A program made the position numbers and the translations under genes. A stretch of DNA of 64,000 nucleotides from Octopus sinensis (Eukaryota). The stretch covers positions 6,510,001 to 6,574,000 of the forward strand of contig NC_043007.1 of assembly GCF_006345805.1 (NCBI RefSeq). The letters are read 5' to 3'. Under the pieces are notes generated by a model, which was given only the letters and a program-made list of their open reading frames with translations, was not told the DNA's origin and did no database searches. Positions 47,202 to 51,410 of the stretch are shown piece after piece; within the stretch, counting starts at the first letter, position 1; the number at the start of each line of letters is the position of its first letter.

Positions 47202-47372
47202 ATGTTTGTATCTGACAACTTTATTCTGCTGAGAAACACAGCTTCGGGAACGGGAAGACATTTCCCAGTCCACTCTACAAGATGCCTTTTGTAGAATGAA
47301 CTGTAGACCTCGTCAGTAACACATCTAGAAGTTTGTAAGATGGCACTTTCATACAGATTAAGATTCGCTTGT
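47202..47372 (-). CDS. Candidate 171-nt phase 2-2 exon (QANLNLYESAILQTSRCVTDEVYSSFYKRHLVEWTGKCLPVPEAVFLSRIKLSDTN)
   Basis: Acceptor ttttgttgtctgctttcgctcttgacag|A and donor AT|gtgagc. Length 3n, only one frame open. Family not recognised. Confidence 0.55.
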
Positions 47373-47523
47373 CTGTCAAGAGCGAAAGCAGACAACAAAA
47401 CTACTGAATGTGTTGTGTAATCTAAATAATGTGTCCTGAAGATTCGTGTGAAAAAGACAACCGAGTTATGCCAACCGACATCATCTCATTCTAAATATGC
47501 ATAGTCAATAGAGATAGACTTAC

Positions 47524-47579
47524 AAGATTAACAAAAACCGCATCAGATTCATTGAGAATGTTTGATATGATGAGGAACG
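47524..47579 (-). CDS. Candidate 56-nt alternative exon
   Basis: ttagttcag|C acceptor and CTT|gtaagt donor, leaving a 151-nt intron to 47372. Contains ATG (47552) in frame with the next exon. Confidence 0.3.
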
Positions 47580-48117
47580 CTGAACTAACTTTATATACGT
47601 ACATGCATGCATATATTCATACATACATGAGACAGACAAACAGACAAGTTAGGACTAAGACACTAAAAGTAGACTGGCTGGGTACCATGACATTGTATTC
47701 ACATGAAGGTAAAACAACCACGAGGTGTTATTTTCTTGGTAGTATAGTGCAGCACCTCTTGCCCTTCGAGTACCGAGCTTTCAAAGCATCACATACTCGC
47801 TATAGGTGTTAAGCATAAACGTCAGCATTCGCAGCACGGCTTTCTGAGCTAAGCTCAAAATAAATCTCTCTCCGCCTCAATATTCCACCAAGCTCATAAC
47901 ATGATTTTCCATACCAATCGCCCTTGTTTAACCCCAGATTCCGAAGCCTAAGCAGAAGGAAGCCATTTCATTTTTCTTATAAGGATTATAAAATGGATTT
48001 TGTTCTGTTTCCTTCGTACATTCTCGCATGGTTCCCGCAACATTCATTGAACATATACTTCACAATGCTTCGCAAAACTAACACATTCTAATCTATTTCC
48101 ATACATTATATTCGTAC

Positions 48118-48350
48118 TATCTATCTATCTATCTATCTATCTACTATCTATCTATCTGCCTATCTCTTTCTATCTATCTATCTATGGATCTATCTATCTA
48201 TCTATCTATCTATCTATCTATCTATCTATCTATCTATCTATCTATCTATCTATCTATCTATCTATCTATCTATCTATCTATCTATCTATCTATCTATCTA
48301 TCTATCTATCTAGCTATCTATCTATCTATCGATCGATCGATCTATCTACC
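48118..48350. repeat. (ATCT)n tetranucleotide microsatellite
   Basis: Directly visible. Confidence 0.95.
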
Positions 48351-49250
48351 TATATATATTATGTATATATATATATATATACACACATTTACATATTAGT
48401 ATATATATATATATATATATATATATATATATATATATTACTTTTATATATATATCCAACACAAAACATTACCGAAATAACTCTATTGGAATATAGCTTT
48501 CAATTACATTCGAACTCATTAACTTTATTTCTAATTCGTCCTCAGTTTACTCATCCTTCTCGAATTTTCGAAGTAATATATGTTACCATATTTATAATTT
48601 CAGTCAGGTGAATATCAGAGAGAGAAAAGAAGAAAGAGATTGTAGCATAAAGTACATTAAAAGGTAAAACAGATCAACTGATTAACTTCCTATTACTTGC
48701 AGTTCACTAATAATAGGTTTTCGAAAATAGTTACAGAGATGATATTACTTTTCGGTTTATTGCAGAATATCCGTGAGATTTCGTTACGAATTTCTAAGGT
48801 CACTGGCCATGGCTTTTGAGCCAATTGTACCTTAGAATTATTTTAATCACCCTCAAGCACTGTAAGTTCCAATAAAAGATCTGAAAGAATATTTTCTTCG
48901 TATTCATGCTTTAGAAATTCTGATTTAATATGGAAAATGTTATTATCTCATCATTTAATCCTCTGACATTTTTCAAATGTAAATTTTTGCGCTATAAAAT
49001 GTTATATAGAATTATATATATGACTGCAAGTAGATATAGAAATATTACTTTTGAGATAAATCGGGAAAATGACGCTTATACATACACAGGCATAAGACGA
49101 GACAGCAGGAGAATTTGTTTATAAAAGATATAATTTGAACTTTTTACGCGGGTTTCATCTGCAGGGAATGATTATCAGTCACGTGATGTACATTATATCA
49201 TATACAAAATAAGAAAACAAAACAAACCGAATTGTGGTATAAAGTCTTAC

Positions 49251-49325
49251 CTTGACAGCAGTTTCAAGGTAGCCATAACTAACGTAATAATCCCTTTCAT
49301 AACCAATATACGCATGCGTACCTTC
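49251..49325 (-). CDS. Candidate 75-nt exon (KVRMRILVMKGIITLVMATLKLLS at phase 2; EGTHAYIGYERDYYVSYGYLETAVK at phase 0)
   Basis: aatttgtag|G acceptor and consensus AAG|gtaaga donor; length 3n. Confidence 0.45.
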
Positions 49326-50612
49326 CTACAAATTTCGATAAGGTGCTAGAGTAAGTTTGGTGTCCCTTTTCAAGAATAAGGCGGCTGATGAAGATTCCCT
49401 TACTATGTTTACAAATATAATGATTTAGATATTATGTTTTATATACCGTGATTTCTTTTAGACATGGCGATATTAACCAGTCGTTAGAATTCATTATACT
49501 CATGATTCAGAATAAACGCCAGGTATTTATCCAGTGAAATATTAATTAGCAAATGACGAAAGTACATATGTTAGATTATCATTTCCATTAGCTACTGCTG
49601 TTTCTGCTACAAGACACATGGCATTCAGAGTGCTTCTGCAACATCTTGTATCTTCCAGGGTTCCGTTTAATTGAAGTGTATGTTTATTGCGGCGAGTGTT
49701 TAAATATGTAAATGAACATTTAAAATTTACTGTGGAACATGAACGACAATGTTACGGGTAGCATAACATTTTTAGTGCTTATGTTTTTGTTATCTAAAAC
49801 ACAACATACATTAATGTTGAATCGAGCTTATCCAATGAAACATATATGGGATTAGTAGTAAATTAATACAGGATCAATAATATTCATATAATATTTAATA
49901 GTAAATAACATAACTATTTCACTCAAATGATGTTCCTTGCATATTTATCAAAAATAAGTGAGTGCTAAAATATATTTCAAATCTCTGCATATTTGGTACG
50001 TATTTTTATGCCAAACAATTGATCATGTTGTTTTTATACCGTTGACTTCATTGGATTCACGAATTCCTGCATCTTAATGAAATCTCTAAGTAATTCAGGA
50101 GTTACAATGAAGGAGCATTTTAAAAATGCAAATATGAAAATAGGAAAGATGTATGAAAATCATTTTATTCATTTATTTATTTATCTTTTGCCATGGTATA
50201 AACCTGATAGACAACAATGGTAAGGAAGATAAGTTAGAAATTTGAATAAGTATTGATTATTTTTCACACTAACATAAGGCATCGAGATTAAGAATATCAG
50301 GAAACGCAGGCTGTGCAAAGTATATTCTTTAAATAAGACACTCCCAGCATTTATTATTGCAAAATATTGTATATTTTGCAGTATTAGAAGTAGATTACCA
50401 TACATGCTGCTACTCTCGAACGAACAATACTCGTTTTTTATGACTCTCTAACACTGGTTTCCAATCCGAGGAAAGCATTGTTTCACCTTTTATATAGAAC
50501 CTTATTTTATTGACTATATTCTGTTTTATTTGCTACAAAGCAGTTCGGTTTTCATTTATGTTATAAACATGGTCACCAAGGGTCGGGATTTATCAAGCTT
50601 CTGTAGGTTTAC

Positions 50613-50735
50613 TCTTGAGATATTAATGCCCTGTGTATATAAGGGTCACATTTGGACGCTATTGACAAGAGACAGGCCACGATTTGGGTTGGTACATAAT
50701 TGTCATTGTGGGGATTGCTGTCAGAACGCAAAGAT
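50613..50735 (-). CDS. Candidate 123-nt phase 2-2 exon (SLRSDSNPHNDNYVPTQIVACLLSIASKCDPYIHRALISQ)
   Basis: Strong acceptor ccttttgctttgtcttttcag|A and donor AGA|gtaaac. Only one frame open; it stops immediately past the donor. Confidence 0.45.
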
Positions 50736-50929
50736 CTGAAAAGACAAAGCAAAAGGTCTTGAGAGATCCTATAAGTCCTGTGAATTTAACGATCTAGGTT
50801 TGCACCTCTCCATCGAAACCAAAAGACCAGGACTTAAAGTGAACACTCATATTCAGAAAAAATAACGCGATTTTCTCTCCCAGTTTATAAGAATGAAATA
50901 ATTTTTATCCCGATATTTATGCAGAGGAA

Positions 50930-51410
50930 GGCGGCGAGCTGGCAGAAACGTTAGCACGCCGGCTGAAATGCTTAGCGGTATTTCGTCTGTCTTTATGTAC
51001 TGAGTTCAAATTCCGCCGAGGTCGACTTTGCCTTTCATCCTTCCAGGGTCGTATTCGATGTCTTTGATGTCTGCTTTCGCTCTTGACAGACAAGCGAATT
51101 TTAATCTGTATGCAATTGCCATCTTACAACAATAAATGAAAATAAGTACCAGTTACGCACTGAGGTCGATATAATCGACTTAATCCGTTTGTCTGTCCTT
51201 GTTTGTCCTCTGTGTGTTTAGCCCCTTGTGGGTAGTAAAGAAATAGCTATTTCGTTTGTTTTTACGTTCTGAGTTCAAATTCCGCCTTGATCGACTTTGC
51301 CTTTGATCCTTTCATGGTCAATAAATTAAGTACCAGTTGCGTACTTGGGTTGATCTAGTTGACTGGCCCCTCCCCCAAAATTTCGGGCTTTGTGCTTCGA
51401 GTACAAAAGA
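50930..51410 (+). mobile_element. Family A SINE carrying an 80-bp foreign insertion, followed by a second older body
   Basis: Head at 50930, insertion at 51052-51131 between GGGTCG and ATAAAT, second body from 51247 with the alternative tail. Confidence 0.9.
51068..51129 (+). repeat. Inverted copy of 47333-47394 (59/62 identical)
   Basis: tgtctgctttcgctcttgacagacaagcgaattttaatctgtatgcaattgccatcttacaa versus the reverse complement of 47333-47394. Confidence 0.95.

Follow-up and report, generated by a model that had tools for sequence, protein, structure and literature searches.

The window examined here, the whole stretch of Octopus sinensis DNA that was analysed (64,000 nt; positions 6,510,001 to 6,574,000 of contig NC_043007.1), contains about 18 matches to a SINE with a consensus of 232 nt. 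The orientation of the element was assigned from the common 5' start of its copies, a B-box-like motif (GAGTTCAAATTCC) and A/T-rich simple tails. As to a tRNA origin, no tRNA was reported by ARAGORN or Rfam, and the literature search found no paper on the SINE sequence. One plus-strand copy, at 50930-51246, is split in two parts, which were delimited by blastn of the consensus and by global alignment: the 5' part (50930-51051) corresponds to consensus positions 1-122 and is 92.6% identical to the window consensus, while the 3' part (51132-51246) corresponds to positions 123-232. A further partial unit on the plus strand (51248-51364, consensus 50-166), recovered by repeat search and blastn of the consensus, adjoins this copy and provides context outside the event described below.

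Alignment of eight SINE copies from the window, together with mapping to the consensus, revealed that the two parts are separated by 80 nt (51052-51131, plus strand), in agreement with the insertion proposed in the original prediction. The extra sequence lies between ...GGGGTCG and ATAAATTAAG... in this copy only; it is absent from the seven other aligned copies and from the window consensus. The SINE sequence breaks off at consensus position 122 and resumes after the insert at position 123, with zero SINE bases lost, and thus the interrupted copy represents the derived state.

The junctions read GGGTCG/TATTCG... at the 5' side and ...TTACAA CA/ATAAAT at the 3' side. Comparison of the junctions showed that the insert begins with 11 nt of scrambled filler, TATTCGATGTC (51052-51062, plus strand), and that the 5' junction carries a GATGTCT-TT-GATGTCT stutter (51057-51072, plus strand), in which the duplicated GATGTCT, as predicted, was read at 51057-51063 and again at 51066-51072. 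Within the filler, the letters ATTC at 51053-51056 are in register with 47409-47406 of the source described below, a 4-nt and hence weak match; the tract originally copied may have been about 77 nt long, with a scrambled patch. The 3' junction has 1-2 extra bases, and an extra GAAAA lies at 51138-51142 in the 3' part of the SINE, six bases from the junction. No target-site duplication of at least 5 bp was found at the insert junctions, neither end of the insert has poly(A), poly(T) or a polyadenylation signal with tail, and the insertion site (GGGTCG/ATAAAT) is not a T-rich nick site of the TTTT/A type. No clear microhomology was detected at the junctions, as they stand after 6% drift between the copies.

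An independent repeat search of the window recovered the greater part of the insert (51063-51129) as one arm of an inverted repeat of 67 nt, 94% complementary, whose other arm lies at 47333-47399. Direct comparison of the arms gave a reverse-complement identity of 63/67, with mismatches at 51067, 51100, 51113 and 51116 and a sharp loss of similarity at either edge of both arms; the 59/62 inverted copy described earlier for 47333-47394 and 51068-51129 was reproduced in the same comparison. By blastn (word size 7), the arm occurs twice in the 64-kb window (E = 1.5e-25 for the pair), and the next-best matches are only 13-16 nt long. The 47.3-kb arm is therefore a low-copy sequence and the presumed template of the patch, and what the interrupted SINE holds is a derived copy, templated by unique sequence close by. 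A 31-nt core common to both arms had no match in metagenome, prokaryote-genome and viral contigs, from which the core of the SINE, used as a control, was also absent, and the negative is accordingly uninformative. An artefact of the assembly is ruled out, because the arms diverge by 6% (4/67 positions). A small structured RNA at the source arm was likewise rejected: a scan of Rfam E-values gave noise only, with no credible match, and the predicted fold was no better than that of shuffled sequences (z-score -0.10).

When the arms were cofolded as minus-strand RNA, the energy was -107.7 kcal/mol, which bears out the long duplex anticipated for a transcript that contains both; on plus-strand RNA it was -107.2 kcal/mol. 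The predicted duplex of 67 bp with 4 mismatches would be long and stable enough for ADAR, and the arms are thus a potential, generic ADAR substrate whichever strand is transcribed. Read on its minus strand, the source shows a pyrimidine-rich tract and AG followed by 40 nt of open frame, a pattern of letters that is not in itself evidence of splicing. This frame forms part of a candidate exon (47202-47372, minus strand; AG...GTGAGC, 56 full open codons), which lies in turn within a stop-to-stop open stretch of 95 codons (47201-47485, minus strand) that extends past the proposed acceptor.

These observations are probably, and with moderate confidence, explained by a one-off templated sequence insertion, a scar of repair or replication. 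In the proposed sequence of events, a break in the resident SINE, or the stalling of its nascent strand, would have occurred at the boundary of consensus positions 122 and 123. A stretch of 67-77 nt of unique DNA from the same chromosome, at a distance of 3.7 kb (47333-47399, and perhaps as far as 47409), would have been the template of an inverted copy, which end joining would have sealed in place. The stuttered filler, the one or two untemplated bases and the 5-nt GAAAA slip beside the junction would be traces of this process, and the 6% difference between the copies would reflect subsequent drift. The outcome would be a neutral long-range inverted repeat, and a transcript of either strand across 47.3-51.1 kb might form the 67-bp duplex and serve as an ordinary, non-specific substrate of ADAR hyper-editing. 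We infer that copying took place at the DNA level and ran from the 47.3-kb locus into the SINE, presumably without selective consequence.

Templated insertions of the MMBIR/FoSTeS and polymerase-theta kinds involve microhomology-mediated template switching at breaks or forks. Those made by polymerase theta (TMEJ) are about 3-30 nt long and flanked by microhomology, and their templates lie tens of bases from the break at most. The octopus insert does not belong to the latter kind, because its tract measures 67-77 nt, has its source 3.7 kb away and shows no clear microhomology. The stutter was its only resemblance to TMEJ. Local foldback and polymerase-theta insertions taken together are mostly 5-34 bp, templated within tens of bases, and so the length and distance of the tract copied here, as well as the absence of clear junction microhomology, count against a patch at a break. 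Experiments have documented inverted insertions at double-strand breaks whose templates were local as well as distant loci (PMC11724301). Like the template switching at breaks or forks seen in that work (yeast foldback and distant inverted insertions), the octopus insert is an inverted copy of a nearby sequence, with no loss of recipient bases, a stutter in which GATGTCT was copied twice, and a short slip beside the junction.

The closest known kind is the class 2 templated sequence insertion (TSI/TSIP), in which a copied genomic stretch is patched into a break and which is separated from class 1, LINE-mediated insertions by the absence of a target-site duplication, poly(A) and a LINE nick site (Onozawa and Aplan, PMC5110952). 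The insert conforms to class 2: it matches a locus elsewhere, shows none of these three signs of LINE activity, has untemplated junction bases and bears marks of end joining (the stuttered filler, the extra bases at the 3' side and the slip six nt away) in an undeleted recipient, while the seven uninterrupted SINE copies and the consensus serve as a proxy for an empty site. Its 80 nt are at the low end of the class 2 range of 73-414 bp, and its template lies in cis, inverted and 3.7 kb off, whereas the reported human insertions of this type have remote sources, often on a different chromosome, and are inferred to pass through RNA (PMC5110952). Across the proposed intron/exon boundary of the octopus source, genomic DNA and captured piece remain colinear, and the latter was therefore not copied from a spliced mRNA.

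An origin from unspliced RNA is unlikely, though the likeliest of the alternatives; the reverse transcriptase of a LINE, while copying SINE RNA during retrotransposition, might have jumped to a local pre-mRNA and returned, or a cDNA/RNA patch from a nascent transcript might have been used at the break. LINE-RT template-switch chimeras (class 1 TSIPs and U6/L1-type chimeric retrocopies) join host sequence to a retroelement, and in them the host sequence has the same sense orientation as the retroelement. This is also the case here, where the captured piece, as had been noted before, corresponds to the source minus strand in the sense of the SINE RNA, which argues for an RNA template, as does the reported RNA derivation of class 2 insertions in human cells (PMC5110952). 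Timing is compatible with such an event: an insertion of the same age as the SINE would be expected to show 7.5 arm mismatches, and 4 were counted (P = 0.13), and the 6% divergence of the arms agrees statistically with the SINE's age, the comparison being non-significant (P = 0.13-0.32) and too weak to separate insertion at retrotransposition from a later one. On the other hand, the junctions of known RT chimeras fall at the ends of templates, end to end, and come with poly(A) and target-site duplications, whereas the octopus piece is internal, between the adjacent SINE positions 122 and 123, and has neither; it is accordingly not a LINE-RT template-switch chimera or class 1 TSIP. Because two switches and a return to the exact next SINE nucleotide would be needed, with no supporting microhomology, RT template switching is less economical than a patch inserted at a break. 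The captured piece is moreover unspliced, and a source only 3.7 kb away in cis favours DNA proximity, with the reservation that a nascent local transcript would also be near.

A further possibility, that an unrecognised short repeat of dispersed type, such as a fragment of a small mobile element, gave rise to each arm separately and neither was copied from the other, was considered improbable. The nearly identical boundaries of the two copies fit this view, but only two copies exist in the window as compared to about 18 SINE matches, and target-site duplications and convincing terminal inverted repeats are missing from both. The identity of 94% at a distance of 3.7 kb in cis is, in addition, what local templating predicts.

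The original prediction had gone further and proposed 47202-47372 (minus strand) as a genuine coding exon which, in one minus-strand pre-mRNA with the SINE, would be paired over its acceptor by an editing-complementary or splice-masking element. We regard this as very improbable, and equally so the variant in which the break-repair patch made, in one step, a SINE-borne, long-range complement to the 3' splice site of a real lineage-specific exon, and so gave birth de novo to such an element in an animal that edits heavily. The proposal has the very favourable energy of the arm duplex in its favour, as well as the reading of the minus strand from pyrimidine tract and AG through 56 open codons to GTGAGC. 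The SINE-borne arm is also the closest complement of the source stretch, because the nearest SINE copies of opposite orientation are more than 12 kb away. Distant intronic duplexes are able to induce site-selective editing (PMC3479170), and in octopus hyper-editing is exceptionally high and dsRNA is abundant (PMC5625713); most of the editing activity of cephalopods, however, is found in non-coding repeats (PMC5625713). As in inverted SINE/Alu pairs, the Gabra3 inducer (PMC3479170) and metazoan hyper-editing (PMC5625713), the complementary stretches lie within a few kb and could pair in one pre-mRNA as a near-perfect duplex. Unlike inverted SINE/Alu pairs, they match a unique sequence with the patch copied from it rather than two members of a repeat family, and whereas known editing-complementary sequences are conserved and paired with verified exons, the partner here is a candidate exon.

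The exon itself found no support. The candidate had no Pfam match, a word-indexed protein search found no protein with words in common, and an exhaustive phmmer search of 1.84 billion representative proteins returned no credible homologue, its four weak matches being to unrelated LRR, TPR and tandem-repeat proteins and judged to be due to chance. Ten ORFs of the window searched by exact sequence were absent from the protein collection, fifteen concatenated flanking ORFs had no protein match, and concatenated TE-like ORFs, run as a positive control, gave a single match, to a reverse transcriptase. These negatives weigh little, because the collections appear poor in cephalopod sequences. The reading frame and splice-like motifs are of a kind that arises by chance. 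About 150 open stretches of at least 57 codons are expected by chance per window (333 were observed), as are about 10 of at least 95 codons (62 were observed). A crude filter for exons, which asked for an AG, 150 nt or more of open frame and a GTRAG after it, retained 9 distinct candidates in the window, among them a second open acceptor, at 47435, with which the donor of the candidate exon also pairs. The GC content of the candidate is unremarkable (73rd percentile of the window), and the four differences between the arms show no A/G bias, all three that fall within the candidate exon being non-synonymous. Translation, homology and chance expectation thus leave its status as an exon unsupported.

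Were the copied piece to contain a genuine exon boundary, which nothing in the analysis indicates, it would illustrate how duplexes that regulate editing or splicing can arise by a single mutational step. The locus offers a clean, datable case, in the germline of an invertebrate, of an insertion templated by neighbouring DNA, and it suggests that repair scars, besides pairs of repeat copies, can generate long-range inverted repeats from unique sequence.

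Direct comparison of source arm 47333-47399 and inserted arm 51063-51129 revealed an inverted repeat of 67 nt with 94% complementarity, also recovered by an independent repeat search (pair I18), in which 63 of 67 positions were identical and similarity broke off abruptly at either end. The 59/62 match originally described across a narrower span was reproduced, and the sequence agrees with that description of the region. A blastn search (word size 7) found two copies only in the 64-kb window (pair E = 1.5e-25), and when the whole window was compared with itself, just seven duplicate pairs of low copy number emerged, this one included. 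The inverted repeat is real and far above chance expectation. The second arm interrupts a SINE copy whose family consensus (232 nt, built from eight window copies, alignment A1) matched about 18 places in the window. Global alignment showed that consensus 1-122 corresponds to 50930-51051 and that the copy picks up again at consensus 123 at 51132; since the consensus is contiguous around the gap, the insert spans 51052-51131, 80 nt as first described, with zero SINE bases lost. No other SINE copy of the window contained an internal insert (eight-copy alignment and consensus search), and the interrupted copy, insert aside, differed from the consensus at 13/232 positions. The plus strand was taken as the SINE sense strand from the shared 5' start, the B-box-like GAGTTCAAATTCC and the A/T-rich simple tails; neither ARAGORN nor Rfam recognised a tRNA in it. 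Head-to-tail units occurred at three separate loci, 4175-4590, 9899-10634 (minus, five units) and 50930-51364, a full unit being followed by one restarting at consensus 49/50, which suggests a dimeric/multimeric SINE variant or recurrent internal duplication.

The 5' junction of the insert reads GGGTCG / TATTCGATGTC / TTTGATGTCTGC..., where the 11-nt filler contains GATGTCT, present again two bases on within the templated tract, a duplication that the original prediction had noted. The filler also holds ATTC in register with the source, so the templated tract may, on weak evidence, once have measured ~77 nt, 7 nt of which became scrambled. The 3' junction reads ...CCATCTTACAA / CA / ATAAAT.... 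Neither junction showed a target-site duplication of at least 5 bp, poly(A), poly(T) or a TTTT/A site, an absence that sets class 2 (break-repair patches) apart from class 1 (LINE-mediated) insertions (PMC5110952), and inverted templated insertions, with templates both local and distant, are documented at yeast breaks (PMC11724301). As judged from the sequence, a templated-insertion origin is well supported, and the patch was probably made at the DNA level: the SINE would have suffered a break or stalled fork between consensus 122 and 123, and unique DNA 3.7 kb off, in cis, would have been copied inverted and sealed into it. The insert is a fresh instance of an already known kind of mutation. 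Five extra nucleotides relative to the consensus, GAAAA at 51138-51142, six bases 3' of the junction, may have arisen by slippage during that repair.

An RNA-templated variant, with for example a nascent transcript as template, is rather unlikely; the copied stretch runs on without a break across the proposed intron/exon boundary, just as in genomic DNA, so the template was not spliced mRNA. A reverse-transcriptase switch during retrotransposition is less likely, since two jumps would have to bring the enzyme back to exactly the adjoining SINE position. That both arms belong to an unrecognised dispersed repeat is improbable: beyond the two copies, the best remaining blastn matches to the arm in the 64-kb window were just 13-16 nt. 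A 31-nt core common to both arms had no match in metagenome, prokaryote-genome and viral collections, where a SINE control core was equally absent. Exact and homology look-ups with window ORFs retrieved no contigs. The arms carried 4 mismatches, where equal ages of patch and SINE would predict 7.5 (P = 0.13; P = 0.32 without CpG sites), and dating the patch relative to the SINE does not settle its origin. The source was also considered as a known structured RNA and rejected, RNA family (Rfam) and fold (versus shuffles) checks being negative.

In the exon originally proposed at 47202-47372 (minus), the Py-tract/AG, 56 open codons and GTGAGC are not distinctive: the window holds 333 open stretches of at least 57 codons against ~150 in a first-order Markov simulation, and 62 of at least 95 codons against ~10, and nine distinct candidates passed a crude filter (at least 15/20 pyrimidines and AG, followed by an open frame of 150 nt or more and GTRAG), one of them joining a second acceptor at 47435 to the same donor. 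GC content was 40% (73rd percentile within the window). The peptide had no Pfam family and no word-sharing protein, and four matches only among 1.84 billion representative proteins (E = 8e-5 to 8e-4), regarded as chance since these are unrelated LRR, BspA-LRR, TPR/NACHT and tandem-repeat proteins with several repeats summing up. As a control, TE-like window ORFs matched a single reverse-transcriptase protein; the protein collections thus seem to cover the source organism poorly or not at all, and an exon peculiar to its lineage would escape such searches. The candidate exon is unsupported, yet not refuted. Close to the template locus, immediately past the donor side of the open frame, acacactcgcgcgcgcgtacggacacacag (47140-47180) is rich in (CA)n and (CG)n and may adopt a non-B DNA structure.

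Other duplications in the window include a direct tandem duplication of ~737 bp (31998-32734 and 32717-33452, 99.9% identity), which looks very recent, and a 157-bp direct repeat (15206-15362 and 15751-15907, 100% identity) whose copies lie 545 bp apart with microsatellite-rich sequence between. Two low-copy inverted pairs with short spacers, 41067-41181/41560-41673 (84.6% identity) and 53229-53329/53395-53495 (78%), may fold as MITE-like hairpins. Decayed Tc1/mariner-type transposase fragments with broken frames occupy 60911-61764 (plus; HTH_Tnp_Tc3_2, E = 7.8e-6, below gathering score), and 2-322 (plus) encodes the C-terminal part of a LINE reverse transcriptase, with 42% identity across 96 aa to the end of an RVT_1-domain protein of 612 aa (P0005).

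The patch also places a pyrimidine tract and AG in plus orientation within the SINE (51063-51089), a potential cryptic acceptor for any plus-strand transcript; the frame downstream of this AG copy closes after 14 codons. Cofolding of the arms gave -107.7 kcal/mol for minus-strand and -107.2 kcal/mol for plus-strand RNA, so a duplex is predicted on a transcript of either strand, exon or not, and SINE copies in opposite orientation lie more than 12 kb away (consensus search). The four arm differences in transcript sense (T/A, C/T, A/C, G/T) show no A/G bias, and the three inside the hypothetical exon alter the amino acid in 3/3. The duplex first proposed is energetically possible, but the function attached to it, an editing-complementary or splice-masking element over the acceptor, has the physical possibility of pairing as its sole support and is very improbable. 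In octopus, hyper-editing reaches an exceptional frequency and goes with long, almost perfect dsRNA that lies mostly in non-coding repeats (PMC5625713), and the octopus repeat landscape is dominated by SINEs (PMC9068888); on this basis, and taking the window as cephalopod DNA as first proposed, the arm pair, if transcribed, would be one among very many generic ADAR substrates.
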